A stretch of DNA of 64,000 bases. It comes from Hemiscyllium ocellatum. Lineage: Eukaryota. Both the position numbers and the translations under genes were made by a program. This document shows positions 1,124-63,860 of this stretch, piece by piece (positions within the stretch are counted from its first letter, which is position 1; every line of letters begins with the position of its first letter). The DNA is taken from assembly GCF_020745735.1 (NCBI RefSeq), contig NC_083423.1, forward strand, positions 37,634,001 through 37,698,000. The letters run 5' to 3'. Below the pieces are notes generated by a model. The model made no database searches, was not told the origin of the DNA, and was given only the letters and a program-made list of their open reading frames with translations.

Positions 1124-31648
<30,525 letters not shown>

Positions 31649-31649
31649 C

Positions 31650-32620
31650 ACCCCGAGCCAAGGGCAGCCTCTCTGCTAACCCCTCAGCTCCGTGTACCTC
31701 CCAATACCAATCCCCCAGGAAACAGTGTCTGGCTGCTGGAGTCCGCCCCGGAGTTATTTGTCCCCTGCACACACACACAGCCCTGACATTGTTTAACCCC
31801 CTCCCCATCCCAACCCCGTGCTGTGTTTGAACGGACAGGGGAACATAAAGACACGGTGCGGCTCCCTGAAGTCAAACACCAGTGAGTATTGACAGAGCAG
31901 AAACTGCTGGGATAAGGAAGCTCCTTTATTTCTAAACAAACCTCTGGGGACTCAACGCCAAGGTATACAAATACTCCCCCACCACCCCACCTTGGAATAT
32001 TTTAACCGGCAATTTAATACAATCGAGAGCATAAGATTTTTAATTTGTGTTTGATGATACTGTTTAATAAGGTTCGAAGAATTCCGTCAGAGAAGTGAAC
32101 TGGGCACAAAGGGAGAGGGATGACCTCTGAAGTTCAACAATGAAACTTTTGTAAAAAATATTTAAGCAAAACAACATCATCCTTGCGATGTTATGACACC
32201 TTTGACAGGCGGCTTCATTTTTTAGTTTCTGACAGAATGCCGGAAATACATATTGGAAAGAGTCTTAATGCTGCACAGGAACGGAAAGAGTGGATGAGGG
32301 ACTGACTTAAAAAGCAGTGAACACTTTTTTCAAAAAAGAAATACTTATTTTATGTTAAAACATACTACCACTAAACTTGTTTTTCATGGCTGTTTTGATC
32401 TTGCTGCTGCTTTCCAGCTGTTCCCAGACTTACTTTCTCCTGCGGTCAAGATGATCGACGTCACCAACGCTTTTTTTAGAACAACATTTTTAAGAGTAGA
32501 CTAAAACCCTCTCACGATCTCGGGACAGAGCAAAGTCAAATGCAAACAATAAATAATTTGGATGTTGATAGTTTTTATTTGACTGAGTCAGAGTACAGCT
32601 GTGAGTAACCGAGAGAATAC
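31650..32620. promoter_or_regulatory. candidate bidirectional promoter of TRMU and the dehydratase-like gene
   Basis: CpG-enriched unique sequence upstream of the TRMU ATG; GC-box-like ccgcccc near 31743; plus-strand gtgagt donors at 31882 and 32601 that could end a non-coding first exon. Confidence 0.5.
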
Positions 32621-34112
32621 AGTCAATTTACACATAACAATGCAATCTTCAAATCATCAAGATAGATACTTACAGTTGGCGGGAAGAATCCACTTAGCTC
32701 AGTTTAAAATAACTAACAACAGGATTGATATTGTGGAATTAAGTCTAACGCTCAAGGATAACTTGCCACCTGTTTAATGCGGATCTTTATACATGACTAT
32801 CTTGAGCTCACTAACAGGTTAGTAACATGTGTCACCTCGACCACCTTTCTGAACCTCTATCAATATTTTCGAAATGTTCAGGCATTTTAATTGCCTCAGA
32901 TATTAGAGCTAACATTATTTTATTTGCAGTTAACACCAATAGAAATGGGGTTGACAGGGGGTGCTTGTATCATTCAAGAGGACAGTTAACAATTCAAAAT
33001 TAATCTCAGCAATGGCCCTATGACCATTATTTCATGAACTGAAAAGAAATCAATGTATTGAATATCTCAACAACAGATGAGCTTAGCTGAGATAGTGACA
33101 AATGTCACACAGTATCCCCTGAGCTAGCAAGGTAGTAGGATTTACAGGTTCTTGCCTTATGATTGCTTTCTAATGACTCCTACATTCAGTATTTGTGCAT
33201 GACAGTTACTTTAGTTATAGTTATAGATACTTTAATCAACCTGTTCAAATATGTAATACACTTCTGGAACAGGTAGGACTTGAACCCAGGATTTCTGGCT
33301 CAGAAGTTGGGACATAACCACTGCATGAACACAAGACCTCCCCACACTGCTGCACTCTGACTCACAATAAAACAAAACTATCAAATGATCACACATGAAC
33401 AATGGCCATTAGGGCAACTTAATGAGGGGCTCAAGGAACAAGTTGCACCAATGTAATATCCTTAATATAGTAAATGTTCAAAGGCATATTGCAAAATGAG
33501 AGAACAAAACAAATAAAAGGGGATGCTAAACTAAGGAAGGAGTGTTGGAAGAGAGGGCCAAAGATTTAGTCAAGACTAAGATACACCTTGAAATATCATT
33601 TTTTAAAAAATCAAGGGATTTAGGATAGCAAATAGGAACATGGCTGAGGGCTGTGCCAACAATGATAGAATGAAAGGCAGGTGCAAAGCCACACAAAGGC
33701 TCAAGTTGAAAACCTGAAGAATGGGGAAGATGGCATATATTCGGTAAGGCAGCAAAGATCACAAGGGGCAGAAGTTTTGGAGGGAATTGGAAAACGAAGC
33801 ACTCATTTCATATACTATGATATGACTTTGATTTTTTTCAGGCAAGTAAATTGGAAACAAAACAATGATTCCTCACTTGATCCTTTACTGCATCAGGAGT
33901 CTTTTAAATGGCAATCTGAATCTTTGTTGTAGCAAAATTTGATCACAAACTGAGTAAAATTTCTGATAGTGATTCAAATCTCCCTGGCAACATTTTTTTT
34001 TGAGCTTGGTAGATAAAATGAGACAAGAACGAGGTAGATACCAACTCATTATTTTAAAAAAAAGGTTGAAGAAGTGCACTTCTATGCTTTACAATTCAGA
34101 GTAAGAAAGGAA

Positions 34113-34287
34113 ATGGAAGAAGCGGAAACCTTGCTGAGCTTACAGATGTTACAGGAAGCCAGGGAGGCAGTAAAGCAGAGCACTTTGCAAGTTATTAAAA
34201 CACCTATGATCCACCTGGCTAATGGTGCAGTTCCAATGAAAATCAACTGTGACCTGTATCTGAAGCTTGAAAACATGCAGACAACAG
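34113..34287 (+). CDS. dehydratase-like gene coding exon 1 (MEEAETLL...[10 protein letters not shown])
   Basis: ATG at 34113 just after a ttcag| acceptor (34099); donor G|gtcagt. Confidence 0.88.
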
Positions 34288-37200
34288 GTCAGTACAGTAA
34301 ATGCTTATACTGTGTTTTGAATTTATTCCATGTACTGCAGTACAGTAGATTGATTTGTGAATTTTTAGGGTTTTTAAGCTGAAGGGAGACACACTACATA
34401 ATTATGTTCAGACTTACTGGTTAAACTGTTAAAACATAATGACAGAATATTTTGAAATTAATGTTTATTTAATAATATTGGATTTCTGAAACTAAAACAT
34501 TGTTTTAAAAGTCAGAAATATGAAAAAAAACTGTGCTACTAGTAGACCATGTCACTATAATAATTAGCCTTTTCTGACACCAAAATCTGACTTAACTATG
34601 TAGCTGTCTACAGGCATTAGTTTGTAATTAAGAGATATATAGCAAAATAGAGGAGTGACAAGTCAGGTAGAATTATATTTTTTTTTACAGATGTCTTGTT
34701 AACTCCAGCGTGTAGGAATTTTACATCACTTCAGTTAGAACTGTGTTTTAAACATTTCTGGTTGACTGATTTTGTTTTCCCACTAATAAATGTATGAATG
34801 TAAGTTAATTTACTGACCTCAATACTGACATACTACAAGTTGCTCAGAAAACGGAACCAATTTTGTAACATTCAATGTGGCACTTACAGTTTTTGATATG
34901 CCTTCAAGACAAATATTACATAAACATTTTATTTTGCAGGCTCATTCAAGATCAGAGGAGTAGCAAATCAGTTTTCCAGAAGAGAAAATGGGCACTTCAT
35001 TACAATGTCAGCAGGAAATTATGGGAAAGCCTTTGCTTATGCTTTGAAGCATTTTGGGCATCGAGGAAAAGTATTAATGCCAGACACAGCACCGGCGTCA
35101 AGGACCGACCTGATTGCAGTAAGCATGGATATACATATGTTAACTGAAAGCATACATTTGAATTGAATCTAAACCTTTTCTGTAGCTAAAAACAAGGAAC
35201 GGAAAAGGCTATTTAGCCAGAAGTAAAGAGAGAATTGTTGCAACAATGACATCAGCTTATGAAGCAATCATATTTGTTTCTGGAAACATGGCCCAGGACA
35301 AGGTTCAAGTGTAGGATGTCACCATGGTTGACTAGGCAGAGAATATAAAGTACAAGAAAAATGTAGTTCTAAGTCTGGACTTAGAAAGTATGAAACTACA
35401 AGCCATTAAGACTATGGGAGGGAAGGAGTTCCATATCTCTGAGGCCCTGGAAGAAACTTTAACTCTGGAGCTGTTCTCATTTTTAATGGTGAAGTGCCAA
35501 GTAGGAAGAGTTGTAAGAGTTATATTTGCCGAAGTATTTTGCATAGCATTACTTTATGTAATCATGATTACACAGCAATCTTGATATACCTGTGGCATCA
35601 GGCTGAGGTACCAGCTCAAAGATTTGGTTCCCTGCATATATTAAAGAAGGAAAAGGAGTATTTGGTAATGTCCATTTGGTCAGATTAAGAGGTTATAGGT
35701 AGAAATCGAAAACTCTATTTACATTTCTGTTGGGAATGATGGAGGGGGATGAAACATATAAATAAGGAAAAGTTACAAAATATTTGATGGTATGGTACAA
35801 ATGTATTTCTTTTTGATTCTTTAAATGTAATTTTGCAAAGTCAAAGACATCACCTAAAGAGATAATGTTGAGAGACTAAATGCAGTGATACAAAGTGGAA
35901 AAAATTAGGAACCCTACACCGAGCTCAAAAGTGGAATTAATTGGTGTGTGTAAGATATACCTTAAGCTGAGTATTGGTGGATATTAAGTAGCTTACACTG
36001 TTTATTTGCGAGGTTTTAAAAACTTAAGTTGCACACTTGGGCCTATTCTCCACAGCAGACCGACTAAGTAAATATTCTTATTCAGGCCTGTTTCTGCTGC
36101 CCTTTGTGATGACTTTTCTGTTCACTGTCATTTTCCTTCCCCACGGAGAAAGTGAGGACTGCAGATGCTGGAGATCAAAGCTGAAAAGGTGTTGCTGGAA
36201 AAGTGTAGCAGGTCAGGCAGCATCCAAGGAGCAGGAGAGTCGACGTTTCAGGCATGAGCCCTTCTTCAGGAACCTTTCCTGAAGAAGGGCTCATGCCCGA
36301 AACATCGACTCTCCTGCTCCTTAGATGCTGCCTGACCTGCTGCACTTTTCCAGCAACACATTTTCAGCTTTTCCTTCCCCACATCAACAATCCAGTGTTA
36401 AAATGGGGTAGAGTTTACAGTGCTAGTAGTGGCAAAGGGTCTGCTACTTCAAACAGCAGCTATGGAACTGTAGGTTTAATTACCTCTCAACTATCAGCAA
36501 ATTATACTTTTAAATTTTACAGCTTTATTTCAGGAGTACAGGGCCTCCTCACAATTTGCACATACTTAATGAGATTTCAGAACTTTAAAAGTTAAAATGG
36601 ATTTATTTAACATTAAAAATCTTGAATGTTGTCATTTTAATTGCAGTTCTACAATTAATGATATCTTAACTCCTTGTAGAGCAGGATCCTTGAATTGGAT
36701 GGAAAATTCACATCAGGACTACAGCAAGCAGACTGTTAAGAGTTACAAGAAACCCAAATGTCCTAAGCAAACAACACTTGATAGATAACAGGAAAGAGCT
36801 TTAATTTTGAATTACATCACCAGTTTCAATAGATAGTTGTTTCTGCGTGGTTTATTCAATTTTGACAAATGAACAGAGAGTAGTAGTTGATGGAATAGGT
36901 TCATCTTGGAGTGCAGTTACTAGCGGTGTTCCACAAGGATCTGTTTTGGGACCATTGCTGTTTGTCATCTTTATAAATGATCTAGAGGACGGGCTTGAAA
37001 GCTGGGTGAGCAAGTTTGCGGATGACACGAAAGTCGGTGGAGTTGTGGACAGCGAAGGATGTGGCAGGTTACAGCGGGATATAGATAAGTTGCAGAGCTG
37101 GGCAGAAAGGTGGCAAATGGAGTTCAATGTAGCTAAGTGTGAAGTCATTCACTTTGATAGGAGTAACAAGATGGATTACTGGGCTAATGGTAGGCTACTT

Positions 37201-40200
37201 GGTAGTGTGGATGAGCAGAGGGATCTCGGTGTCCATGTACACAGATCTCTGAAAGTTGCCACCCAGGTAAATAGAGCTGTGAAGAAGGCATATGGTGTAC
37301 TGGGCTTTATTGGTAGAGGAATTGAGTTCCGGAGTCCTGAGGTCATGTTGCAGTTGTAGAAGACTCTGGTGCGGCCTCATCTGGAGTATTGTGTGCAGTT
37401 TTGGTCGCCATACTATAGGAAGGACGTGGAGGCATTGGAACGAGTGCAGAGGAGGTTTACCAGGATGTTGCCTGGCATGGTAGGAAGATCGTATGAGGAA
37501 AGGCTGAGGCACTTGGGGCTGTTCTCATTGGAGAAAAGAAGGTTTGGGGAGATTTGATAGAGGTGTACAAGATGATTAGGGGTTTAGATAGGGTAGACAC
37601 TGAGAACCTTTTTCTGTTAATGGAGTCAGCTGTTACTAGGGGACACAGCTTTAAGTTAAGGGGTGGTAGGTATAGGACAGATGTTAGGGTTGATTCTTTA
37701 GTCAGTGGGTTGTGAGTTCATGGAATGCCCTGCCAGTAGCAGTGGTGAACTCTCCCTCTTCATGGTCATTTAAGCAGGCATTGGATAAGCATATGGAGGT
37801 TATTGGGCTAGTGTAGGTTAGGTAGGCTTTTTTTTTTAGATTAGACTTACAGTGTGGAAACAGGCCCTTCGGCCCAACAAGTCCACACCGACCCGCGAAG
37901 TGAAACCCACCCATACCCCTACATTTACCCCTTACCTAACACTACGGGCAATTTAGCATGGCCAATTCACCTGACCCGCACATCTTTGGACTGTGGGAGG
38001 AAACCGGAGCACCCGGAGGAAACCCACGCAGACACGGGGAGAACGTGCAAACTCCACACAGTCAGTCAGTCACCTGAGTCGGGAATTGAACCCGGGTCTC
38101 AGGTGCTGTGAGGCAGCAGTGCTAACCACTGTGCCACGAGGGCCGAAGGGCCTGTACTGCGCTGTATTTTTCTATGTTCTATGAACTTTGTTTGGCTTCA
38201 AATATATCTTCAATAAAAGAAGAAAAAAAAAACAGAAAAGGCCTGTTAGAGATTAATATTTTCAAAAATGTTACTTATCCCCATAAAATACCAAAGTCAG
38301 AAAAATCAATGTATTTACTTGGTGATTTGAGTGGCCCCCACCACCCACAGTGCAAAGACCCTAAAACTGGATCCTGAATTCTAGCAAATTGACAAGCATC
38401 AACCAGCTTGCTATTACTTGATAGACCAAAGAGTTAAATTCAACAGAAAACTTTACCAGTGTTTTCCTCTCCATGAATGCAGCCAGACCTGCTAAGTATT
38501 TCTAACACCTGGAGTATTTTGGTTTCAGTTTAAGCCCTGATTTCTATTCAATTTAGCTTTAAACAAAATAAAGTTTATTGGAACAAATGAGATGAAAAAA
38601 GTGGTAGCTCAGCATGTGCAAAATATTTATGACTAGATCATCTTCATGTGCCTAGTGGCAAACATTTTGGAAGGTCAATTTAGGAACTCCAAATTGTCAA
38701 AATAGTTTCAGATTCTATTAGGAAAATTGTATTTTCTCTGTAGGTATCTGAACTTGAGTTGAACAGAATACAATCAGCTTAAGTCACCTCAAAACCATAG
38801 TCATAAAATGAAATGCATCACTATGAACTGGTTAAAAACTTAGCTTTTTAAAAAAGTAAAAAGATGCTTTACACGTGATACAATTTCTATAACATCTGTG
38901 AACAAGAAACAAGTATTACAAATTAATTGACATGGAGTCCTTTCATAGGTCTTAATAAATAGCATAAATATTCTTTATTACAATTATCAATGGCATTAGT
39001 AATTTTGAATGTTGCACATTTTTATATCACAATCTAGAGTTATGGTGTAGAAGTTGAGCGGATGCCACCCAAGTCATTGTTGTCTGCTGTGGAACAATTT
39101 GTTGAGGATAAGAAAATGAGTTTCTTACACCCCTTTGATGACATAGATTTGATTGCTGGCCATGGAAGGTAAATGTCCAATTCCTATCTTTCTCTTTTTC
39201 AACTGATGGAGGTGAAGTTACTTCCTTCTTACAATTTACTGCAATATACCAGAGCCAAAGAGGCAACCTCACTCACTCCATAGATTTATTGGCCAAACTG
39301 AGTCTAGTTCTCAGCTGGACACATCTAACTTTTACATATGATCTCTTCAAGAGACTACTCCATATTACTTTATTCCAATCATGACTCCCTAATCAAAGTA
39401 GAGTTAAAGGTTATATTGAAAAAGTGACTTCCTTAATGAAAATTGTTTAATAGATCAAATAACTTTTGATACTACCTGCTTAGTATGCAATTTCATAAAA
39501 GTCTAATTTCATACACAAGAACAACTGTTGTATTGAATGCTTTTAACAGCAAGATGCTATACTTCATACAAAACAGCAAAAACTAGACAATGAAGCTACC
39601 AAAATGAGTACCTATTTCAGTAAGTAGCACAAGTGACTGGTGCAATTAAGTTTACTTCAAAAACATTAAGACAAAAAAAAACACTGATCCAAATCTAGAT
39701 TGTATCTCTGTGTTATTAGCATTGGTCTAGAAATTCTTGAAGAAATTCCATATCCTGATGTTGTGGCAGTTCCTTGTGGAGGTGGTGGTTTGCTTGCAGG
39801 GGTGGCTGCTGCCATCAAACTATCTGGCTGTACAACTACACATGTATATGGAGTGGAACCAAGAGGAGGTAAACTATACTTCAGTTTCGTTTTGTACTCC
39901 AGTTTTAAAGGCACCAATTTCACCATTTATTCTTGATCATCAGCTTGTACCATGTACAGAAGTTTTAATGAAAATAAACCAGTGTTTATGGATGCAAACA
40001 GCATTGCCTCAGGACTTGCTCCACCATTTGCAGGTGAGTGAAGCTGATGATACAGCTTTAGTTTCGAATGGAGGTTAAAAAATAATATGGATTGCGAAAA
40101 GCAAGTTGGAGATTACCAAATACATTATTTGTTTACATTTTTCAAAGTGCAAAAAGAATCAGATTGTTAAAAAATACCCAAGATGACTGCCAGAAAAACA

Positions 40201-40529
40201 ATTCAAGCATCAGAACTCAGAGAAAAAAATAAATATGCCAGTAAGACAAATACTTATCAGGATCTTTCAATGTCTTTCTATTCTCAATAGGTACAACAAC
40301 ATTCCAGATTTGCAGGCAACAAGTGAAAGAAATCCTGTTGGTATCAGATGATGAAATAAAAGCGGCAGTTTCCATGCTATACAAGATTGGCCTGGTTGTG
40401 GAACCCTCAGGAGCAGCTGCTTTTGCTGCTATTGTTGGAGAAAAGATCAATCTTAAAGGAAAGACAGCAGTGGTCATAATAAGTGGAGGAAACATCAGTC
40501 CTGAAGAGCTTCAGCATATTGTTCATTAA
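34113..40529 (+). CDS. PLP-dependent fold-type-II serine/threonine dehydratase (ammonia-lyase) / serine racemase-like protein, 320 aa, complete
   Basis: Exons 34113-34287, 34940-35118, 39038-39168, 39720-39868, 39944-40033 and 40291-40529 total 963 nt, are all GT-AG and have no stops. Motifs: [15 protein letters not shown] (PLP lysine), [38 protein letters not shown]. Confidence 0.93.
34940..35118 (+). CDS. dehydratase-like coding exon 2 ([11 protein letters not shown]...[12 protein letters not shown]...MPDTAP)
   Basis: ttttgcag| acceptor, |gtaagc donor; contains the PLP-binding Lys. Confidence 0.93.
36145..36368. mobile_element. non-autonomous fold-back Penelope-tail element with two inverted hammerhead-like cores
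   Basis: About 95-bp inverted arms around 36273-36275; 14-bp TSD ttttccttccccac at 36131-36144 and 36369-36382. Confidence 0.85.
36872..38182 (+). mobile_element. 5'-truncated copy of the same CR1 family (RT C-terminal half and 3' UTR), interrupted by a SINE
   Basis: Nearly identical to about 24425-25450; ends ttctatgttctatg. Confidence 0.95.
37830..38137 (-). mobile_element. HE1-type V-SINE inserted in a CR1 3' UTR
   Basis: Young copy, antisense to the host LINE. Confidence 0.92.
39038..39168 (+). CDS. dehydratase-like coding exon 3 (SYGVEVER...[15 protein letters not shown])
   Basis: tag| acceptor, AG|gtaaa donor. Confidence 0.92.
39720..39868 (+). CDS. dehydratase-like coding exon 4 (IGLEILEE...[10 protein letters not shown]...GVEPRG)
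   Basis: tag| acceptor, G|gtaaa donor; glycine-rich phosphate loop. Confidence 0.93.
39944..40033 (+). CDS. dehydratase-like coding exon 5 (CTMYRSF...[11 protein letters not shown])
   Basis: cag| acceptor, G|gtgagt donor. Confidence 0.9.
40291..40529 (+). CDS. dehydratase-like last coding exon (...VSDDEI...[11 protein letters not shown]...ISGGNIS...stop)
   Basis: tag| acceptor; TAA ends at 40529. Confidence 0.93.
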
Positions 40530-41349: not shown

Positions 41350-41436
41350 TTAAAACTTCAGTAAAGGAGAGTCCAGATTCACATTTTCCTTATTTGCAGG
41401 GCTCAATATAATCAGCGGAGAGTTGAAATCTATAAG
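41350..41436 (-). CDS. GTSE1: GTSE1 last coding exon (LIDFNSPLIILSPANKENVNLDSPLLKF*)
   Basis: tttcag| acceptor; matches the characteristic GTSE1 C-terminus; TAA at 41352-41350. Confidence 0.95.
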   Translation of the reverse strand, partial: LIDFNSPLIILSPANKENVNLDSPLLKF

Positions 41437-44400
41437 CTGAAAGTGAAATTGTTTTAGTTTCAGAAAAATAAAGTACAGTCAACAAAGTATTGGAGCACAG
41501 AAGGAAGCTATAGCAGATCTTGGAAAGAACAACTAAGTTAATCCTTTTCCCTGTAATCCTGCAAATACGTGCCCAGTTGCCATTTGAAACCTTTTAAAAG
41601 TCTGCCCATGCCAAAGTCTTTTGCGATTTACAACATTGCCAAGTTTAATATCAAGACTTAAGTGTAGATCAATAAACAAAAAAAAAATTGTTATAATACA
41701 GATCTCTCGCAATTCCAGTACCTATTTCTCTCTGATGGAAAACAATGTTCACCACATGCTCTGCCACCTATCCTTCAGCCAATTACATACTGAAGTTACT
41801 TATCCCTTTAAACGGCAATGTCTTTGTTTTGAATAAGTCTTATGTTCTACTATATCTCATCTTTCTGAACTCCATAAATATATCCACAGCATTATATTAA
41901 CCAATCCTGTTATTTAGATCAGTCTCGATGTACTTAAATGAATGCTGATGGTGACTCATTAACCCATGTTTCTCGAAGGGTCAATTAATTTTATCATTAA
42001 CCGTGGTCTCTAGTGCTGTCGTACCAAAGACAATGGATTGGCTCTCCAGGAGTTACCAGGTTACTCTTTTTGATTAAGGTGTTACGTTTGCAAGCCTGCA
42101 GTTCTCCACGAGGTCCATATCCAGAGAAGATCAAACAATGGTGAACGGAGTCTCTGCTATTTCCATCTTTGCTTCCCTTAGCAAGATGTGACGCAACCCA
42201 TCTGGATAAGTTGACTTGTTGCCTTGAGTGATATAAATCTTTTCCTCACTTCTTTCTATCTATTGCTATTCTGATCAATATCCATTTCTTTCTCATGTAC
42301 TACGTTAATTTCATCTGGTGTGAAGATAGATCAGTACTTTAGTCATATCCTCTGCCTCCACAAGGTTTCAATTTTTATCCCAGACCACCTCCACTCATCT
42401 TCGATAAATATATATCATTCTGCAGAGTTTTCTACTTACGTGACAGGAAAGAATAGTATGAACTGTTGTTTTGTTATGGGATTGCAGAACTGGACAACTG
42501 CATTCTTTTTCAATATTAATGACCAGATTGGATATGCAGGGCACAATTTCAAAATTTTCAGATAATGTAAATTTTAGAAGAATTGTAAATGGGTATAATG
42601 ATAACCAGGTTGATTAAATGAGCATATATTTAGCAGATGAATTTTAATGTACAGAAGTTTAGAGCTGTACATTTGTGAACAGGAAGAACAAGGAGAGGCA
42701 ACATAAAATGAAAGATATCATTCTAAAGAGGGGTGCAGCATCATGAGGTACAAGATTTTTATTGTCCATAAATTACTGAACCTATTACTTGACAAAAAAA
42801 GTCTGGAAAAAAGTCTTAGGGATAATAGGCTTTTAAAATAGTACAAGGAACAAAAGAACAGTCATAATCATGCTGAACCTTTTATAAAACACTGGCTTAA
42901 ATCTTTTCTGTATCCGAGTTAAGAGAATGCTTCCAGGGAGGAGACAGACTTTAATTTGTGGATAAACTGGCAAAGCTGAAATTGTTCCCCTTATGGATGT
43001 GAAATTTGAGGGGATTGGAGAATGATGTCCAAGATCATGACAAATGTGAGATAGACACTGCAGCTATTAGTGGAAGGGGAAAAAAAAGAAAAAGAAATTT
43101 TATGCAACAAGTAATTAAGATGTAGGATACAAAATTGCAGAGGAGACACATTGAAATCATGGTTTTTGAAAGGAAATTGGATAAGTCCATGAAGAAAGTT
43201 TGCGTCTAATGGGGAAAAAAAAATGAGTGAAACTAGCGGATTTGCTCTTCAAGAGCAAAGATGCAATAGGACAATTGACCTCCTAAAGTTGTAGCCCTGA
43301 TAATTTGTTAAATTAAAAACAGGAGAAGTAGTTTAATAAATTTTGTATATTCTTAGATATCCAAATCTAGAATCTCTGGATTACCATAGTTTCTCTTGAT
43401 GGGAATATTTAGATTTTATTCAAATCAGCTGTCTTAAGCAGCCTAATCACGTTTCCTTTGCCAATTTATTTGCAATCTACCAAATCTATCTCAATGATTA
43501 TCAGGGTATTTTCACTTTTATTTTTGTCATTTTTGTAAGTATTACAGGAAATGCCCTACTAGGATCATTACCTAGATGTTTTCTCACTAAAGACTTATAT
43601 CTAGAGCCACAACTGGTTCTTTCATTACTGAGCTAGAAAAACAATACACTTTCTTAAATAAACTTTAATTCTTCACCCTTCTTTCACATGGTACTTTTTG
43701 GTTACCTGTACCTTGTACTTTGAACATGCATCATCCCTCTAAAACTACAATATCAAGTTGGATTGATGTTCTCAAAAGTTGCCACCTATCATTTATTTGC
43801 TTCTCTATTCCACTTCACAGTATCCAAGAAAGTTTAGTTCCAGGTTTAAGTCAGATCTCCATCCCAACTAGTATAAACATAGCACAATGTGGCAACTTCA
43901 GCTTGTAAAATCAATCCTTACTTACGTGCACTCACATGAACAAGCACTGTGACATCATGCTAGTGTATTACTTTTATGCAAATTTATTCTCATTCTACAG
44001 TATTTCTTAGTTTACTGTCATTTGCCCCTTCAATTCCATTTTGCACCTCATCTCTACAGTTGTTTCCTTGTGTCCCTCATCTTGCAAAATTCATTTAAAT
44101 TCTGCCTTTTCACATGATTTGGTCCTAGCCAAAAACGTCTCAAATTGTACAAGACCTGTCTGCACCAAGAATTCCTTTCCTCTGCTTTCTCCAATTATAC
44201 ATTCAACTAAGTTTCCTCCCGGTTCTGTACTCACTAACATTCACATGAATTCCAAGGCATGCTATCTCTGATATGCTGTTCTTTAATTTTTTTTTCAGTC
44301 TCCTAAAGCACCATAAAAAGAACCTTAACACTTCAGAAGGTTGTGCCACTAGAAATTGGAGTCCATATTGGAACCAGTGAGAAAGCAGCTAGCATTTCAG

Positions 44401-47400
44401 GTGTGGACCACAAAAAGTTGGAGAGGTAACTCACTTTAAAACTTCATTAAATCCACAAATCAGCAAGTTTAAATATAGGCACAAATAGAATGGTGTTTCC
44501 TGGGCTTTGAAACTCAACCATAGTCAGATACCCCTAGAATATTAAGTTCACAGTTGCTGAAACAAGCTAACCAACATGAAAATAACTTACCGGCTCAGGA
44601 GCCTTCATTGGTGCAACTCTATTTATTTCAGGAGTATTTGAGAGATCAATAAGTGGACGGTCTTGATTTTGCTTATTTTTTGTACCAGCTTCAACAGTGA
44701 AATTCTAAAAGAAAACAAGTTAACATGGATGAAAAAAAAAGGGCGTATAATAATGGTTTTATTCAAGGAGTTACAAAAATATTTTTCCATTAAGCAACAT
44801 TGCCAACTAGATAAATGCATGTAAAAATTTAAAATATTATTAGCTAATTCAAAAAATGGAAAATACATTATCCAAAGATATTTAAAACATTTAACCTCAT
44901 GCTTTTCCCAATAAGTAGACTGTAAACCTGTTTATGGTAGAAGCTATGTCACCTTCAAGGTAAACTCAAAAAGAAGAAACAAGTGAATGAATACGAGACG
45001 CTAGTGTATTATGTTGTGTTGTGTGACTGGCAAGAAACCAGTGCCCGTTAGGTTGACTTACTGAATGAAATAAACGCATGGAGCTTGCAAGCCACCATTT
45101 ACTTGTGCACAATACACTAGCTGTGGCTAACCAGATTGGAGGAATCAGTTGCCTTATTGGAAGTGATTCTTATGAGCCAGGTCTTCCCATATTGGCCCAG
45201 ATTAACAACTCCAATCAAAAGCCTCAGTTAGGGAGATCAATCGGGGCGGCACGGTGGCACAGTGGTTAGCACTGCTGCCTCACAGCGCCAGAGACCCGGG
45301 TTCAATTCCCGACTCAGGCGACTGACTGTGTGGAGTTTGCATGTTCTCCCCGTGTCTGCGTGGGTTTCCTCCGGGTGCTCCGGTTTCCTCCCACAGTCAC
45401 AAAGATGTGCGGGTCAGGTGAATTGGCCATGCTAAATTGCCCATAGTGTTAGGTAGGGGTAAATATAGGGGTATGGGTGGGTTTCGCTTCGGCGGGTCGG
45501 TGTGGACTTGTTGGGCCGAAGGGCCTGTTTCCACACTAAGTCTAATCTAATCTAAAAAAAAAATCTAACCCGGTTCCTATCACTATACTGCAGATATTCA
45601 GCAAAGTACCTCACTAAAAAGGCTAAAATGTATGATAAGAGGTTAGAGATGGTATATTGGCATAGATAGAGAATTAACTACAGTTTAAAAAAAAAGTTCT
45701 TTTTCAGGTTGGCAACCTGTGAGCAGTGGGGCTCCACAAGGATCTGTGCTGGAATTATAACTATTATTGACTGGGAGGCAGCGAGCAAGTGTACTGTTAC
45801 TAAACTTGCAGACAAGAACAGGTAGAAAGGCAGGTGGTGAGGCAGATACAAAACAGTTGAGGGCGAGGTTAAGTGAATGGGCAAAAATTTGGCAAATGGA
45901 GCATAATGTGGCAAACTGTATATTTTGGAATAGAGAACAATTACAACAATCTTGAGGATACTTATGCACAAAACTAAGCTAGCTCAAGTAGCACAGCAGG
46001 TAATCAAGAAGGCCTTTATTTCAAGGACATTGGAGTAGAAGAGTACCGAAGACTTACTGCAATTATACGAGGTGCTGATGAAACCTCATTTAGCGTAGTG
46101 TATGCAGTTTTGGTCCCACTTATCTATGTTACTTCATTGGAGGCAGTTTAGAGAAGGTTCATAAGAATGATCCATGGTTTGGACAGTATGAGTAAGGATT
46201 AAACATGCTGAGAGTCTTCTGCTTGGAATCAAGGAATGAGAGGCAATCTCAGTGAAACATATTAGAATTAAGGGTTTGAAAGGGTAAATTCTGAAAGGAT
46301 GCTTCCCCTTATGGGGAGTCTGAGAATTAACGAGCGCCAATTTAAGAGAGAGATGAAAGGAAGAATTTCTTGAGTGTTGCATGTGCTTGGAACTTTGATG
46401 ACAGCACAAAACAAAGAACTTAAGATAACTGCAATATTTGCTATTGCCTATGGTCCAAGAACCCAACTAACTAATCATGGATCTACGTTAACACCTCATT
46501 ATTCAAGAGCACTCAAAGGATTCAATTGTATATTTATCAGCATTTTGTACTGAACAGTTAACTGTGGTGTCCACTCCCTGTATTTATTGTACATTCCTAC
46601 CTCCTTGCTTTGAGGCTCAGATGTGTGCTTTAAAGCTTCTTCTAGTGGTTTATCAGGAGAGAAATCTAGAACGCAAGGAACCATGGATGGAGGCATATCC
46701 TCTTCAGAAGAGTCAGATGAGCAAAGACCCTCTGGCTTTTTCGACATCTGTTCACTACCAAGGCAAAATAGTTAATGCCAATAGGCTGTAAAACGACTTG
46801 TGAACATTGAATTTGTACCCTATCCTGAGCCATAATTCATAACAGCTGAAAGCATGCACTTAGTCACTAGGTGATTAGCAACAAACATCCAAAGTCAAGA
46901 CTTATTTTATAAGACTTTTGAAGTCAGAAAGCTTGTTGTATTGCTTAAGGAGTGTTAGAGAAATTAAATTACTGTACTTATACATTACAAAACAAAAACA
47001 TTTATATTCAAAGTGTATTACAATGTGGCAGAACTGATCTTTGTGAAATAATTATGTTCATATAAAATTGCACTATTAACTTAGTAATGGAGGGAATTTA
47101 GTCCTTCACCAATACCCATTAAAGAAAAATTTGATGTGTTCTTGGAAAGTTTGAGGTACTTCCCCCCCATTAATTAAATTATGCTTGAATTTTCTAAGAT
47201 TCGCAAACTTTTTTTTTAAAATAACTGAAATTTTTTAAGCAATGGATGAATTATCTGAATTTTTCTAAAATTTAAGCTCAAATAAAATCTTCCCCTCTCA
47301 CCTTGTTAGAATGATGTCACTGGCTGACATACTGCGGTTTCGTGTAGTTGTGGCTTTGTGAGATGACAGAGGTCTTGGTTGTGTTCGTGGAGTGAACGTT

Positions 47401-50400
47401 GGAATACCTGACCTACGGCGATTTAATGGTGTGGGTAAAGCAGATAAACGTTTTGTTGCAGATGTTACGGATGCCAGCTTGTTTGAGATAGGTGTTTGTA
47501 GCATTCCTCGAATAGGTGGTTTATTTGGAGTACAAAACTCTGTACCACTGCGAGATTAAAGCAATATTAGTAGCTTTAAACAAAAAGATATATCTTAGAA
47601 AGATTAATTGTATGTTTGGATAAAAACATTTCTATAACCTTACTTCAAGACTTTGAAATATAGGATGAAACAGCCACACTGTGCATTATCAAGAGATCAT
47701 CAGAAGAGCTTACTGTAAAAATGTGGTTAGACTTAGAGTTTAAGTTTAAGTAGAGTCTTTAAATAGGATAAGAGAGATACTGAGGTTCAGGCACAAGATT
47801 TAGCAGCTTAAGGTTCAAGTCCAGTTGCTGAGACAAATGGGAGTATGAGGCAGAATCTACTGTTTGCCAAAAGTGGTGAGAAGGAAGAGTGTGGGATGGG
47901 AAGAGGAAGAGACTGAGAAAAACAAGGGTAATAGCACTAAAATGAAAAAGCAAGTGTTGAAAACAAGGCAAATGACTGAAAATAAAACTCAGCAAAAAAA
48001 AAGGATCAGCACCGCTTGGCATATAAAACGTAGTGTTATAGATATCTTAGGTAGTGAATGACAAACAATGTTGAAGTAGAATGTAACAGGTCATTAGATA
48101 TAGGAATGGAAAACAATTTAGCAGCTGAGCTAAGGTAAGAGTGCAAACCCTGACAAATTCACTTGGAGATGATGCAGAAGCTTCAAAAGGACAGCAGGGG
48201 TTGAATGTGGGCATTTTTAAGAGGATGGTGTTGACTGTTTTGAAAGCTAGTATCAAATGGTGTAGAAGTGATTTTCAATGGCAACTTTCAGAGGACAGGA
48301 AATAAAATAAGGCCTAATGAAAAATAAGGTCAAATGTAAGTCAGGTTGGAGCAGGGGGTTTTTGTTCTCCTTGTACAGAGATGGAGACCTAATGCAATAC
48401 AGCAAATCAATGGCAACCCAAAAGCATGTTTCCAAGGGCAACACCCACATTCCGAGTGTAGATTGAAAATAGCATATTGATGGAGAAAAGGAATGCCATA
48501 TGCGGAAATTAGACGATTCCCCTCCCACTCAACACAGTAGTAAAATAAAAACTAAAAAGATGGAAAATTAATGGTCAAAGGTTCAACTAAAATTTTAAAT
48601 TGCAGCTACAAGTGATTTGGATAAATTCCTCTTTTCCCATCCTCATCCCAGTGAATGCAGGAGGAAGTGGGAGGAATAGTTTATGGAACGTATGCAGCTG
48701 TTCAGCAGTACATGATAACCTGGTCAGCGATAGATGTATACAGACGTGAGAGGCTACCAAAGACATGAGGACAGAGTTCAAACTATTATGCTTTTACTAG
48801 TTATTTGAACCACTATTAGAAAAGGGGCACAAAGCAATTTTTGGGCACCGTTTACCATTGAGGAATATGTTCACGTACCAGTTTTGTTCATTTAAGACTA
48901 CTTTATTAAGAAAGGGTTGTAAAGCCGATAGAGGGGTAATTGGCTCAAAGGAAAATGGTAACAAAAAAAAAGGAAAGCTTGATTGCTTTCCAAGAAATTG
49001 ATGCTGAAAAGCATGAACATGTGCAATACCACTGCAGCAATCACTCAATAGTGCTCGCCAAAAGATTGTATTTAATAAGTTTTTTTTAAAATAGTTGGAC
49101 AGGGTGGAACATCTACAACTATATAGACTGATAATATCCTGTTTTGACACTCTACTGTAATTAGCAAATTCTGGTTACCTCTCAACTGCACTGCAGGACA
49201 ACAGCTTCCTTGGTTGTGTTGCTTTTGACCTTGCTGTTCCAGGTGAAGGTGCTTAAATCACAGTTAATAAAGATGATTAATCTTTCCAAAACATGTCAAA
49301 TAATCCCTTTTGTACCAGAGATAAAATGAAATATTATTGAATAACCACTGTTGGATAGAGGAGAAATGGTACACTGAGAATGATAAAATCCCTACAATGC
49401 AAATGAAGGCCATGAGGCCCAACCAGTCTGCACCAATCCTCCAAAGAGCATGCCACCCAGACCCAGCTTTCCCATCCTATCCTCGAAACACCAAATATAC
49501 CAGAGCTACCTCACCTACACATTCCCTTACACTACTGGCAATTTAGCATGGCCAATTCACCTAATCTGCGCATCTTTGGATTGTGGGAGGAAACCCGAAT
49601 ACCTGGCAGAATAGATCCACAGGATCCCTACACTGTGGAAACAGGCCCTTCGGCCCAAGAAGTCCACACTGACTGTCTGGAGTTATCCACTTAGACCTAT
49701 TCCTCTACCCTCCTATCCTACATTTACCCTTGAATAATGCACATCGCCTACCTAACTTGTCCATCTTTGGATTGTGGGAGGAAACCCATGCAGACAAAGG
49801 GAGAAAGTGCAAACTTCACACAGATAGTCACCTGAGGTTGGAATCAAACCAGCCTCTGGCACTGTGAGGCAGCAGTGCTAACCACTGAGCCACCGTGCCA
49901 CCCCAATTGGCAGAAACCCATACAGATACTGGGAGAACACGCAAACTCCAAACAGACAGTCCCAAGACTGGAATTAAACTTGGTTTCCTGGTGCTGTGAG
50001 GCAGCAGTGCTAAGTCACTGAGCCACTGTGCAACCCAAAATAACCCTACTTTGGTTTCTAAACATCAACTTAATCCACCATTTCCACTTCAATATGTTAA
50101 TCTAGATTAGAGCACAGTTGTCTGCTCTATACAGTCCAGTTCTGCACAACCTAACTGGCTTTTAACTGCCAATGTCGTCACCTTGCTAAACCTCTCCATT
50201 TTAAGAAGCTCCTTAAAATGATATTCTTGGTCAAACGTTTAGTGACCTGTCCTAATGTGGTCCTATATGGCATAGTGTCAGACTCTGATTGTTAATTGCT
50301 CCTGAGATATATTAGAACTTGATTACCACCATTCCTTCATTGTCAATGGATCTAATTCCTGGAATGGCCTCTTACAGAGCTGTGGGCGTTCCAACTCAGC

Positions 50401-53400
50401 ACTACTGGAATGACTCAAGGAGGCTCACCAGCACCTTAAGGGGAATTAGAAATAGGAAATATTGCTGGCCCAGTCAGTAATGCCCACATCTGGAGAATTA
50501 TTATTATTCTGGGCACCACTCAGGCATATCGGGGAAGAAAACCTACAACTGCTGATGGTTAACTTTGCAAATTTTTCAGTGATACACAAAAGGGTAGACA
50601 GGAAAATCCGGTACCTGGACTGGAGGCTGCACACCTTTTTAAATGGATGCATTTTACTTTGTAAGATAAAAGGTCCAGTACCAGCAAACATTTCCTTTTC
50701 AAAACAAAAAAAAACAAACAAACAAAACTGTGGGTGCTGAAAATCTGAAACGAAACCAGAAATGGCTAGAGAAATGTAGGTTTGGCAGCATCGGAGGAGA
50801 TCTCTTGAAACCAAAATGTAAACAAGTCCTCTCATTTAGATGTTGTACACTAATAGTGTAACCTTGAATTTAACTGTACAAATCTACTTCCCTCCTATTG
50901 TAATGTAAAAATGGAACATAATTGTTAATCTTTACTGGAAAGATGCAATTGAATGCTAAAGGAACAGTTAAGAGAACCAGGCAAAATAGAATAGTTCTCT
51001 CAAAATAGAGTAGTGATCAATTATAACCCCACACCCACCATTTGAACTTTTCCATTGTAGATAACACAAAATAATTTGAATATCAATAAATGATAATCAT
51101 TTCATATTCTTGATAGTTCAATTGGCAATTAGTAGGCCCAAGTTCCATGAAAATTTACAAAAGAAAAAACCCTAGACCCACGTTTAAGTTGTGAAATACT
51201 AATACTTACCGCTGGATCTTTTCACAGCTTGGCTATTAACAGAAGCTTTGGTCTTTGGGCACCGATCTCTCCCTAGTGTATTTACTGTTTGGTTTGACTT
51301 GACTTTAGTATCAACATTTGTGTCAGTTGAGCTAATTCTTTGTAAACCTTTATTAGGAAGACTCTGCATCCCTGTTCCTTTCTGACTCATCATTCCAGGA
51401 GCAGTTACTTTACAAGTATTTGCTGGTGTTAGTGATTTTCTTGGAACATCTGTTGAGCACCTAGAACTAGATGACTTGGTCTTTGGGCTGGCAATTCTGC
51501 TGCTGTTTTTCAAGGTTTGTAGGTTTGATGCATTTGAGCGCATGGTTAGGGGCACTGTTGAAAGATAAAATCAAAATATTTAAAACAAAGAAAACTAGTT
51601 TATCTTGATTTGAAAGCAAGATTATGTTCAGCAAATAATAATGCCAAAGCAGAATTTCAGATGCACTTAACCAAAAAAGGCCTTTATGTTCGTACTAGAT
51701 GCTGCATTTTAAATAGTGTCATTTTACAAACATAACTACGTCTGCTATTTCAGCTCTCTAACTCCAGATTGAAATTTAGATGATCAAGGAACTATGGTTG
51801 GACCTAAAGTGAGTTTCAACTGTACATTACAGAAGGACATGCATTTTGGTGTAAATTGCACTTTCAACTCAAAAAACTTTTCAACTCAGTTTCATTTGTA
51901 CCATACCAGCTTTCTGAAATATATTGCTATAATTAGCAACTTCCAGCACAAAAGGGGGCCATTCAATTCACCAGTTCCACATCTGGAAACAAGAAGCCAT
52001 ACAATTTAATTATGCTTTCCATCTCTTGGTCTGTGTAACTGCTAATCAGAGTTGTAATTCAATGCTAGTACTCCTGCTCAAAAATGTGAAGGAATTGACC
52101 ATGGTCTCGAGCACCTGACCAATCCAAAGCACTTTTGGAAATGGTGAGAATTGCAAGTCAAAAATTGAATTCCCATTGTAAACACAAGAGTGGCAAAGAC
52201 GTATTTTGAGTGCAGGATAACATGAACATATTCCAGTTCAGGACAAAGCTAGTGAAAATCATTGAGAAAGAGTATATTTAGGATGTTGAGTAGGTCCTAT
52301 TTCCTTGAATGGGATAATGTGGCATTTCATGGAAGTAAACAAGGCTCCTCAATTTCATTGCTCAACGAGAGAGAAAGTGGCATATACTTAAAAAGTATCA
52401 GACATGAAAACCAAAAGTCATATGCCACAATATGAGTTACAAAATATTAAGATTTAAAGTCTGACTTGCCTCTGCCACCACTATTGGAATTGTGGAGATG
52501 AGAATGAAGACCGGACGACAAAGAGGTACGGTTGAGAGTCCTTGCTGCAGAACCAGTACGATGCTTGGTCATCGAATTTGAAGTTTTAAACCCAGATACA
52601 TTTGGTTCACTGACCTATAAGGAAATCAAAAAAAAGTTTCTTTTTCAAATTCTAACAGCACAACAAAAGATGCCTAAAGCATTTGTTCAAAATTTCACAT
52701 ATTTCTGCTGATCTGCTTAATCTCCTTAAAAGCCTGTACAACACCCACATGTGAAGTTCAATAAGATAACTGCAGGTGATATATATTGAGGTTGAGAGAT
52801 CTAGCAGGCCAGGTAATATTAGCAAGGTGCAAGTCTAGTTGGAGGACAGGGACAAAGCAGTGTTACAGCACAAAATCAATAAATCACTAAAAATTGCATC
52901 ACTGTTTTGAAGGCCATAACACTATAGTAGTAGGAAGGCTCATTTGTTAGAGGGATAGAATGGAAAGAGATATTGTGCTAAAATGTGAATCATTTACACA
53001 CAGTTTACACACATGCAGGATATTAGGAAAGGAAATGGGGTCAATACAGAGTATTATGGAGATTTACAGATGATACTAGAAATACATGGATATATAGAAG
53101 AGGAATAGATTAACAGGCTGGATCTCTAAAGAGAACATAGGGATGATATAGTTGATCTTTTAAAAAATATTTTGATACAGAGAATTAATGTTTTGTTTTG
53201 TGGAAACAGCATAACTGGAGGCCATCAATACAAGGGAGAGTCACAAAAGAAATCTACTTCAATAACATTTCTTCTGCATTCCTGAAGAGTGGCAAATGGT
53301 GAGGATTTTCTACCACAGGCGGGAGCATTTGAAGTATAATAGTTTAATTTAAATAAGGAAACTGGATAAACAAGGGAAAAAAAAGTGAAAAATAATAGAT

Positions 53401-56400
53401 TTAGTTGGGAAAAAAAAATGGTTCTCGTGGACCACTGACTTCTAATTCAAAACTGTTCATCATTTTTATGCTAACATTTCCTCTGGAAAACAAAAATATT
53501 TCCCAGGGCTTTCAACCATTTCTAGACTGTTTAATATTCTTCACAACTATAATGCAAATACATGCCCTCCATAGTTTAGAAACTATCACTCTGGCACAAT
53601 ATTACTATAACACCTAAAGCTACAAGAATTTATTATTTTGTTAGCATAACTAAATGCAGTTTTAATTGACAAGTTAACTGTTTGGTTCCATTTAGTTTCA
53701 GACAGACAGTTTGGCTGATTTGTCATAGCATTGCCCTGAGCAATGAACCCACAAATGGCTGTCACCTATTATTTTACGGATTAGAAACAGAGGCAGAGAG
53801 TTCTTTCTACCTGCAAAGAACACGGCCCTGTTTATTAATATTGATTTTCCAGGGGGTCTTCACTGCTCCTCAGAGATATGGGTGTAGTGCAGCTTACGGC
53901 ACTCTTGGCCCTTCTGACGTTATTTCAGGGTTTTGCCAGAGTAAGGAAAAAAAAGTCCAACTTTATCTGTTATCACTCTTGATCTTCACAATAGCAGGGA
54001 ATGGAAAATTCACAGCCATTCTGACTCACCTAATAACTAAAAAAGGTCATAGACTTAAGATTTTAAATTCATCCAGGCTATCTCCTTACAGTAGCAATTC
54101 AACTCTGAAAATTCAAACTCAACTTCACCTCATGCAACGTATTCAATGGCTGCCATGAAGAAAAAAGTGAAACACTACAGCAGAAGCTACATGACTACAT
54201 TAAGGCAGCCAGTATACTATGAACAAACAGTTCTCCAAACCAGATTAAAAATTTTGAATGTTCCTAACTATCGAAGCTATAAAATTAAAATAAATACAGT
54301 TCACTCATACACATTACAAATCAAAATAAAAATACTATTTTTCAAATCAACCATAAATTTCATCGGTATTGAAATTAGGAGAGTGCCACCTTTGGATCTG
54401 TACATCAACTATTTCAGGTAATTGGCTAGAGCAAGTCATTTTATAAAAAGTCTATTTTTTAAACATGAAGACCACTGATTGAACTAACTTTCCATATAGA
54501 TGGATTTATATTCATTATATGGAGTATTCTTTCTTAGTTGAGGTTGCATTCCTGAAAACCACAAATAAAGCATTGATGGAATCAATATTGAAACTGGATT
54601 AAGTTTCATCGAACCACCTTAAACAAAATCATTATTCTTGCACCTAAGATGAAATACAGTATATGTACTTTAAATTCTAACCAAAAGTTTGACAAGTAAT
54701 AAAAAGGAAACAATATTCTACTTACAGTATCTCACTTTTGTGGACTATCCAAGTAGAACATAAGGAGGAAAAAAATTAGGAAGAAAGATTTGGTACTGCT
54801 CAGCAGCTGTGCTCATCGACCAAGTGGTATATATATGTGCAAAAACAACATGGACACAAATTCCAGCACAATTTGTTCTCGAATAACTGACTCTAGCTGT
54901 TATCCCATACCTGGTGTGCAGCCAGTGATCCATCCTTACGGCCAAGAGCATTAGAATGGGGAGGAGAATCACACTCATTGGAAGTATTAGCAACAGCATC
55001 TGGGAGGTTGCCCAATGAAGTATTGTTCAATTGTTTCATTCCGCAGATTGTCAACCTAGTTCCTGACTTAGGCTGGATGAGGATAGAAATATAAAAATCA
55101 GTATAATTTTTTTTAAAAATTCCTTGGCGGGATGTGGGCAATACTTACTATGTAAACATTTATTGCCCAGACAGTAGTTAAGAAGTACACTGTAGTGATT
55201 CTGGAGTCATATGCCAGAACAGGCAAGGATAGTAAATTTTCTTCTTTGAAGGACATTAGGTAAGTTTACACAAATATCAACATTGATTACATGGTCACCA
55301 TTATAGGCCCTACCAGCTCTTTCTCCTAGTTTTATTAAAGTTATATTTCACCATCTGCTTTGGTGAGATTGAACCCCTGTCTTCAGAATACTTGCTTGCA
55401 TTTCTAGATTGCTGGTCCAGTGACATTACCACAACACCTCCCTCCCTGACCAAATCAGTACTACTGGATTTTACATTTTATAAAGATTCAAGGTCAATGC
55501 ATCGATCTTGTAAGCAAAATAAAGAAATATTTACTGTAGTATTGGCATTCCTAGCTTGCAAATCCTTTCCCAACAAAAGCTAAAGAAATAGATGGCGCAA
55601 CAGCCATTTTGCACGGGGGGGGGAAGAAAGAAAAAGGGAAAGACAAAAAACAAAAGAAAAGGCAAGAAAAGGAAAGAAGCAGATTTTTTAAAAAAAACAC
55701 CAGGACTTCCCAAAAAAGTAGTGTATAGGGGGGCATCAAGTCAAGTGGTACACTGAAGTTTTGGTGATACCTAGGCAGGAATGACAGAGTCCCCTCATCC
55801 TGCTCACATGGGCTTTCCTCAAACTCCACAACTCACTCAGGGGTCATGATAATTTTAAGCCTCAAAAACAGGGTCATAGCCCATGCATAAAGAGACAAAG
55901 TCAGTTGTATTTTATATGATTGTGCAAAACATGACAATAGTTGGATGTTTAGAAGTGGTCCAGTGGATAAAGCTCATTCAGCATGCAATCCTATAGCAAC
56001 TGAAAGCATTGAAAAAAAAAATGTATTTGTATCGTTTACGAATAACAGCAATAACAGACTTGGACTCAAAAGTCCAATTAGAAAACTAAACCTTTCAAAG
56101 GAAAGCAAAGTATCATCAACCCACATAATCATCCAAATACTCAAACCAACAATCACAAAATGAATTACTTTTCTCCAAGGATCTTTAACTTCTAGGGAAG
56201 TGCAAGCAACATTTACAATATACCAAATGTTTGGATAAATATGTCCAAATAAGTGTTCTTCTACATTGGGTGAACAAAGAGTGGAATTTGTCTTAGAGGA
56301 TTTCTAGTGCCTATGTACAAATTCATTTACACAGATATTTCTTTTACCCAACTAAGGTCATACGTAGTATCGCAGAAGATAATAGTGGCAGTACTACAGA

Positions 56401-63314: not shown

Positions 63315-63589
63315 TTCTTGAATTGACCTTCACACCTGTTGGAACACACATAAATACAAGAGAGTAAAATTCAAAAAAAGTTTTAGGAAATCAGCAGCAG
63401 ACACAATGGGAATTTAATCTCACTGCTCAAAGTCAGTACCCCACACGGTCTCATCACCCTCAGCCCCCACTGCCCACTGCCCCCTCCATCCCTCCATGTC
63501 TGTCTCTCTCACAATCTTCACCTCAGCCCCCACTGCCCCCTCCATGTCTCCGTCTCCGTCTCCGTCCTCCCCCCCCCCCCCTTACAACC

Positions 63590-63860
63590 CCCTCTCCAAT
63601 CACTCAGCAGCTGGGCCGAGGACTCAACGAAGTCTTTCCCCTCCTGGACCTTGCTTGTCCTCACCTCAGCCTCTCCGCAACCTCTACCACGCCAATGGAC
63701 AGACCGTTCACTAACGACACTCTCCCCTTTCACAGAGATTTGAAATTGACCCGGCCCTCAGCGAGATGGCCTCCCATTGGTCCATTTGAACGAAGCTGTT
63801 ATGCCTAGGTCTGTCGCGCCTGCGCGTCTCCAGCAATGCATTCTGGGGACTGTAGTCCAT
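63590..63860 (-). promoter_or_regulatory. GTSE1: GTSE1 promoter / non-coding exon 1 (donor after 63665)
   Basis: CpG-enriched. TTTGAA (CHR) at 63739-63744 and 63785-63790; CCAAT boxes at 63596, 63692 and 63776-63780 (reverse); GCGCCTGCGC (NRF1-like) at 63816-63825; ACTACAGTCCCCAGAATGC (ZNF143-type, minus strand) at 63838-63856; donor GAG|gtgagg. Confidence 0.75.

Follow-up and report, generated by a model that had tools for sequence, protein, structure and literature searches.

A 64,000-nucleotide window of the Hemiscyllium ocellatum genome (assembly GCF_020745735.1; NC_083423.1, positions 37,634,001–37,698,000 of the forward strand) raises the question of what kind of enzyme is encoded between TRMU and GTSE1, two genes described as direct neighbors in human, and of how the gene came to lie there. 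The product is a pyridoxal 5′-phosphate (PLP) enzyme, named in public annotation as a probable serine racemase. Our analysis suggested a different assignment. The locus probably represents an intact, conserved gene for a stand-alone PLP enzyme consisting of the catalytic domain only, which forms an animal orthologous group of its own, acts by beta-elimination in the manner of Ser/Thr dehydratases, and has an ancestral position between TRMU and GTSE1.

The PLP gene comprises six coding exons on the forward strand at 34113–40529. Three-frame reading and explicit joining of the exons gave 963 nt, corresponding to 320 codons and TAA, with no internal stop codons. All five introns begin with GT and end with AG, and their phases are 1, 0, 2, 1, and 1. 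A preliminary description of this DNA, made from the sequence alone, had reported six GT–AG exons and an uninterrupted protein of 320 residues, and its coordinates were exact. It had also placed the gene between GTSE1 and TRMU, which agrees with the PF03054 exons found on one side and the PF15259 exon found on the other. Pfam analysis of the 320-residue protein identified a single domain, PALP (PF00291), at residues 25–307 (E value, 8.6e-68; score, 229.3 bits; gathering cut-off, 35). Pfam detected nothing beyond PALP, hence neither an ACT domain, whose absence had been claimed, nor any other regulatory domain; the protein ends at residue 320 and lacks the C-terminal ACT-like domain that is specific to biosynthetic IlvA. 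The Schiff-base lysine K62, the glycine-rich loop G182–G185, and the pyridine-nitrogen serine S306 were all present in the alignment to human SRR, which identifies a fold-type II PLP enzyme.

The protein is identical at every residue to RefSeq XP_060698858.1, “probable serine racemase isoform X2” of H. ocellatum. Public databases thus already contain a prediction of the gene, which is not newly discovered; its novelty had been overrated, as RefSeq holds it for this and more than 100 other species. An alternative upstream coding exon, belonging to isoform X1, was located by tblastn of the RefSeq isoform X1 on the window. When this exon was joined, GT to AG, to an acceptor that sets the start of the next exon at 34100, the first 26 N-terminal RefSeq residues tested were reproduced.

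The gene order around this locus was compared among fishes. TRMU (−), the PALP gene (+), and GTSE1 (−) follow each other in Chiloscyllium punctatum and in the bowfin Amia, with a GTSE1_N gene at the same position in both. In stickleback, TRMU (−) and the PALP gene (+) are followed by other genes. The microsynteny considered in the preliminary description is thus kept in C. punctatum and bowfin, and the adjacency to TRMU in stickleback. The bowfin gene is likewise divided into six coding exons, whose boundaries fall at corresponding residues, and 10 of 10 splice dinucleotides are kept in C. punctatum. Jawed vertebrates thus inherited the gene at the TRMU–GTSE1 position from their common ancestor.

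The distribution of the family was determined by successive searches. With the last exon as the query, many relatives were found, although none was a close representative at the 50% clustering level, and a profile built from those relatives and the six exon translations retrieved more than 100 fish proteins. The nearest protein from another species was that of C. punctatum (97.2% identical), and the H. ocellatum RefSeq model was found within the 90% cluster of this protein. Identity to the shark protein was 78–85% in Heterodontus, Scyliorhinus, Cetorhinus, Mustelus, and Pristiophorus, 67% in sturgeon, 65% in gar, 64% in bowfin, 58–65% in very many (more than 100) teleosts, and 60% in two salamanders; overall, orthologues across fishes, lungfish, and salamanders were about 60–91% identical. 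When the Pleurodeles protein served as the seed, the search also yielded Lissotriton, axolotl, bichir (58%), and the lungfish Protopterus (61%). Relatives of approximately 50% identity occurred in amphioxus, sea urchin, the brachiopod Lingula, and the snail Lymnaea, and the prokaryotic matches, drawn from 185,579 species genomes, were at most 42% identical. The gene persists in sharks, ray-finned fishes, lungfish, and salamanders; its apparent loss would have occurred before or within amniotes.

Full-length orthologue coding sequences of 323–324 aa were found on Logan contigs of approximately 1.05–1.2 kb, and a newt cluster contains one of these sequences. Compared with the axolotl gene, which spans 415 kb of genome, these compact contigs fit spliced orthologue mRNAs. 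For the shark gene, the last exon and its 3′ flank reached 0.98–1.00 of the sampled words in two small same-organism runs, guessed to be RNA, compared with 0.26–0.46 for the whole gene, which suggests exon enrichment. Pleurodeles waltl has two family proteins (P0339 and P0340) that are 76% identical to each other and carry one locus tag on large contigs; they may have arisen by duplication in salamanders only, or they may reflect separate haplotypes or assemblies. In the sea-urchin (604 aa) and catfish (577 aa) models (P0051, P0264, and P0275), PALP occupies the C-terminal half only, so that these models would be either real fusions or merged gene models.

To place the shark protein among known enzymes, it was compared with sequences of PDB entries. 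The best match was Dictyostelium serine racemase (163 bits; E value, 1e-46), followed by Salmonella TdcB (155), Pseudomonas aeruginosa IlvA (147), Schizosaccharomyces pombe serine racemase (140), human SRR (135), rat and human SDS (97–98), and SDSL (83). An AlphaFold2 model of the protein (pLDDT, 95) matched TdcB best, with a template modeling (TM) score of 0.92, a root-mean-square deviation of 1.8 Å, and 32–33% identity. Next came the phenylserine dehydratase of Ralstonia pickettii (34% identity; TM, 0.90), IlvA, S. pombe serine racemase, and human SRR (TM, 0.88; 29% identity). None of the NCBIfam equivalog cut-offs was reached (at best 226 versus 379, for TIGR01127; 209 versus 453 for the TdcB model NF006389), whereas the control, E. 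coli TdcB from NC_000913, scored 650.

Phylogenetic analysis was performed by maximum likelihood (LG+C20+F+G4) on 49 rows with CysK as the outgroup. The vertebrate proteins formed a clade (100/99) whose inner order approximately follows the species tree: sharks; bichir, sturgeon, gar, bowfin, and teleosts; and lungfish with salamanders. E. coli TdcB, IlvA, and all SSGNH (SRR-type) proteins formed another clade (99/100; branch length, 0.83) that excludes the family of the shark protein. In a second tree, to which the best prokaryotic matches from the 185,579 species genomes were added, all added proteins fell on the TdcB/IlvA/SRR side (SH-aLRT, the Shimodaira–Hasegawa-like approximate likelihood ratio test, 100). 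The CysK root is a long branch, and only the split, not its direction, is claimed here. These trees, together with the low scores to SRR, TdcB, SDS, and SDSL, agree with the earlier suggestion of a separate member of the Ser/Thr dehydratase-racemase family.

The family is marked by the motifs MSAGN[YF]G and GLAPP[FY]AG and a length of approximately 320 aa. SAGNYG occurred in 157 of the related sequences retrieved, versus SSGNH in SRR-type proteins. Some prokaryotic matches share a GLAAPFAG-like loop but carry GNH or GNA rather than GNY. In an alignment of 32 family sequences, K62, G182–G184, S82, G84, and N85 were invariant. The window protein belongs to the anamniote SAGNYG group, having both motifs, a place in the 100/99 clade, and adjacency to TRMU, which was found in the window, C. 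punctatum, bowfin, and stickleback. The data supported the SAGNYG family as a separate lineage of the Ser/Thr dehydratase-racemase superfamily, distinct from SRR, SDS/SDSL, and TdcB/IlvA.

The database names of the orthologues disagree with one another. They include TdcB, IlvA, L-threonine ammonia-lyase, phenylserine dehydratase, L-serine deaminase, and (probable) serine racemase, with the symbol srr in some teleosts, as expected from best-hit naming of a protein that is equidistant from several characterized enzymes. The catabolic threonine dehydratase TdcB (E. coli and Salmonella; PDB 2gn0) is likewise a single domain of approximately 320–330 aa without ACT; it has S-A-G-N with alanine at the racemase serine position and shares the lysine motif SFKIRG, the GGGG loop, and SGGN with the shark protein. 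However, GNH and DGCDVSRPG of TdcB are replaced by GNY and GLAPPFAG in the shark protein, whose gene is an animal gene with introns. The R. pickettii phenylserine dehydratase (Q10725; 326 aa), the source of many fish RefSeq names, is also a single-domain enzyme but is no closer to the shark protein than TdcB is. Mammalian SDS and SDSL (PDB 1p5j and 2rkb) are fold-type II PLP Ser/Thr dehydratases and, as vertebrate enzymes without a regulatory domain, resemble the shark protein in general design. They are nevertheless much more distant, as their scores (98 and 83 bits) were below those of every SRR, TdcB, and IlvA structure.

The active site was examined by alignment to human SRR, with which the predicted cofactor site is complete. 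F61–K62 corresponds to F55–K56 of SRR, the ring contact and the PLP Schiff-base lysine that serves as the si-face base; G182–G185 to the tetraglycine phosphate loop G185–G188; and S306 to S313, which forms a hydrogen bond to the pyridine nitrogen (PMC6424897). Three further positions differ. A83, within M-S-A-G-N-Y, takes the place of S84, the proposed re-face racemization base of SRR, and L132 that of R135, which is responsible for the preference of SRR for anionic substrates (PMC6424897); Y86 aligns with H87. The second catalytic serine of racemases is thus absent. Replacement of this serine by alanine in SRR abolished racemization and kept beta-elimination (PMC6424897). TdcB and IlvA likewise have alanine at the re-face position. 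The divalent-cation site is also altered: of the human SRR ligands E210, A214, and D216, the first two are matched by E208 and A212, whereas T214 replaces D216. At the substrate-recognition loop (H152-P153-N154 in human SRR), the shark protein has H149-P150-F151. The H-P-F sequence is the pattern reported for the serine-using SerR and SDH enzymes (PMC11850409). Teleost orthologues have H-S-Y or H-S-F at this loop.

These residues are consistent with the following reaction. The amino group of the substrate would displace K62 from PLP, K62 would take the alpha proton, and the beta-hydroxyl would leave. The released enamine would then be hydrolyzed to a 2-oxo acid and ammonia, as in L-Ser/L-Thr dehydratases. 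Racemization would not be expected, as this protein has alanine (A83) where racemases have the re-face serine.

Other explanations of the locus were weighed against a conserved dehydratase-type gene. The preliminary description had left two origins, retention in cartilaginous fish with loss in the human lineage or gain in the lineage studied here. It is extremely improbable that the gene was gained in this lineage by horizontal transfer or recent duplication, or that it is decaying or unexpressed. Nothing apart from the absence of the gene in human speaks for these readings; the same neighbors and intron positions are shared from sharks to bowfin, the family also occurs in lungfish, salamanders, and invertebrates, and identity to prokaryotic proteins is at most 42%. 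Horizontal transfer and lineage-specific gain were rejected by synteny and phylogeny. A pseudogene was rejected as well, as the reading frame is uninterrupted, every splice site is conserved, and the protein is 60–68% identical to those of bony fishes. Of the two origins, retention followed by loss in the human lineage was therefore supported and gain was not, and retention proved far wider than cartilaginous fish, extending to ray-finned fishes, lungfish, and salamanders. It is also quite improbable that the gene is a translocated or divergent SRR orthologue that makes D-serine, as the RefSeq name “probable serine racemase” says. The teleost symbol srr and the best PDB match, a Dictyostelium “probable serine racemase,” would agree with this, and no separate canonical SRR was demonstrated for this shark. 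SRR structures (human 3l6b, S. pombe 1v71, and Dictyostelium 6lut) do share the fold (TM, 0.83–0.90; 29–33% identity), the phenylalanine before the PLP lysine, the tetraglycine loop, the serine to the pyridine nitrogen, the glutamate E208, and the serine-type H-P-F loop. However, the shark protein has Ala, Tyr, Leu, and Thr for Ser84, His87, Arg135, and Asp216 of SRR, including the re-face base (PMC6424897). It scored 121–163 bits with SRR and TdcB structures, whereas an SRR-family protein with HSSGNH (P0115) scored 186–278 bits with SRR/AspR entries (human SRR, 211), which places the shark protein outside the SRR family. In the trees, P0115, the stand-in for SRR-family proteins, and the other SSGNH proteins joined TdcB and IlvA in the 99/100 clade without the shark protein (SH-aLRT, 100 in the second tree). 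The mutually inconsistent names of the orthologues are what best-hit naming would give.

The enzyme could instead be a PLP lyase or beta-replacement enzyme for a substrate other than Ser/Thr, such as a D-amino acid or a beta-hydroxy amino acid (for instance, an aromatic one), with an activity outside those of human SDS, SDSL, and SRR. We consider this unlikely but plausible. The Ralstonia phenylserine dehydratase (34%) is as close as TdcB (33%), the family-specific Y86 and GLAPPFAG loop adjoin the cofactor and substrate region, leucine replaces the arginine that selects anionic substrates in SRR, and the NCBIfam scores stayed below every equivalog cut-off. On the other hand, the H-P-F loop follows the serine-using pattern, and no sequence feature indicates any particular alternative. 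A broader proposal, which we regard as doubtful, is that the SAGNYG proteins are PLP lyases confined to animals, whose substrate or reaction is unlike those of all characterized Ser/Thr dehydratases and racemases and whose signature is the invariant tyrosine at the GNH histidine together with the GLAPPFAG loop; they would be needed by water-dwelling anamniotes and discarded by amniotes. If this were true, fishes and salamanders would own an amino-acid catabolic step without a human counterpart. The preliminary description had gone in this direction with an activity that humans lack; the claim is unproven, as human SDS, SDSL, and SRR also dehydrate Ser/Thr.

Several points weigh against our assignment to an intact, ancestral gene for a Ser/Thr dehydratase-type lyase. 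Literature searches found no enzyme assay or functional study of any family member. The invariant change of His to Tyr in GNH and the GLAPPFAG loop are unlike the characterized dehydratases, so the substrate or the reaction could differ. The trees leave out vertebrate SRR, SDS, SDSL, and Q10725 and represent the SRR family by the stand-in P0115; the cluster names of distant representatives yielded no vertebrate SRR. No frog, caecilian, reptile, bird, mammal, or coelacanth was found among the 120 matches listed of the Pleurodeles-seeded search (8000 candidates scored), the lowest of which were still 55–58% identical; this one search points to a loss in amniotes, and perhaps in frogs too. That the two small same-organism runs are RNA is a guess. 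The dN/dS ratio against C. punctatum was 0.33 on 17 differences only, and the 60–68% identity between sharks and bony fishes is a stronger sign of constraint.

The features of the PLP gene and its neighbors are listed in Table 1. The PLP gene lies head-to-head with TRMU, which extends past the left end of the window; the upstream exon of isoform X1 starts only 1.1 kb from the TRMU start codon. This divergent arrangement is kept in other fishes, and 31648–32777 is likely a shared bidirectional promoter of the two genes. On the other side, an open reading frame (ORF) segment with its stop codon at 41350–41352 was provisionally assigned as the last GTSE1 exon from ORF reading and general GTSE1 features; Pfam gave no match for this putative exon. 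If the provisional assignment is right, the PLP gene is tail-to-tail with GTSE1, with stop codons approximately 0.8 kb apart. Read in the orientation of GTSE1 and TRMU, the order is GTSE1, the PLP gene on the opposite strand, and TRMU.

Table 1. Coordinates, in window positions, of the PLP gene and the neighboring genes.
Feature	Position	Strand	Remarks
TRMU exon	4172–4465	−	PF03054
TRMU exon	10777–11019	−	PF03054
TRMU exon	15408–15614	−	PF03054
TRMU first coding exon	31430–31675	−	ATG at 31648; PP-loop SGGVDS; PF03054
PLP gene, alternative upstream coding exon (isoform X1)	32777–32817	+	ATG, 13 residues, and first bases of a split codon; GT donor after 32817
PLP gene, coding exon 1 (320-aa isoform)	34113–34287	+	ATG at 34113; N-terminal helix and first strands; following intron phase 1; from frame reading and orthologue alignment
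PLP gene, coding exon 2	34940–35118	+	PLP lysine motif SFKIRG (K62); family motif MSAGNYG (S82–Y86)
PLP gene, intron 2	35119–39037	+	3.9 kb, full of retroelement debris; reverse-transcriptase fragment at approximately 36811–37554
PLP gene, coding exon 3	39038–39168	+	Substrate-recognition loop H149-P150-F151-D152; from alignment and PMC11850409
PLP gene, coding exon 4	39720–39868	+	Tetraglycine phosphate loop G182–G185; E208
PLP gene, coding exon 5	39944–40033	+	Family motif GLAPPFAG (235–242)
PLP gene, coding exon 6	40291–40529	+	EPSGAA; SGGN (S306, pyridine-nitrogen partner by alignment); TAA at 40527–40529
GTSE1, whole	41353–57757	−	C-terminal end at 41353–41478 provisional
GTSE1_N exon	57032–57757	−	PF15259; E value, 1e-28

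Repetitive sequence was also observed in the window. An uninterrupted ORF of 887 aa at 22716–25376 (+), inside a TRMU intron, contains endonuclease (PF03372 and PF14529) and reverse transcriptase (PF00078) domains and is an intact, possibly young ORF2 of a long interspersed nuclear element. The reverse-transcriptase fragment in intron 2 of the PLP gene comes from a truncated copy of this element. One short interspersed repeat family, recognized through near-identical spurious ORF translations, is present in many copies on both strands (approximately 384–869, 3283–3586, 18843–19169, 20743–21045, 37854–38111, 45240–45546, and 49387–50064). Long proline/threonine-rich pseudo-ORFs in several frames at approximately 14228–14998 and 62064–63805 are low-complexity C/T-rich simple sequence; the former lie within a TRMU intron and the latter at the right window end, and the GC skew is strongly negative (−0.39 at 14001–16000).

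The gene itself is ordinary and was already predicted, and the value of this analysis lies in a cleaner classification that corrects inconsistent names. Many vertebrate models variously named TdcB, IlvA, phenylserine dehydratase, serine racemase, or srr constitute one orthologous group that is none of these enzymes. Because this group lacks the racemase serine, the D-serine biology of fishes should not be inferred from it. The SAGNYG gene also provides a clear case of an ancient enzyme gene that has been fixed beside TRMU from sharks to ray-finned fishes, also occurs in lungfish and salamanders, and has apparently disappeared from amniotes.

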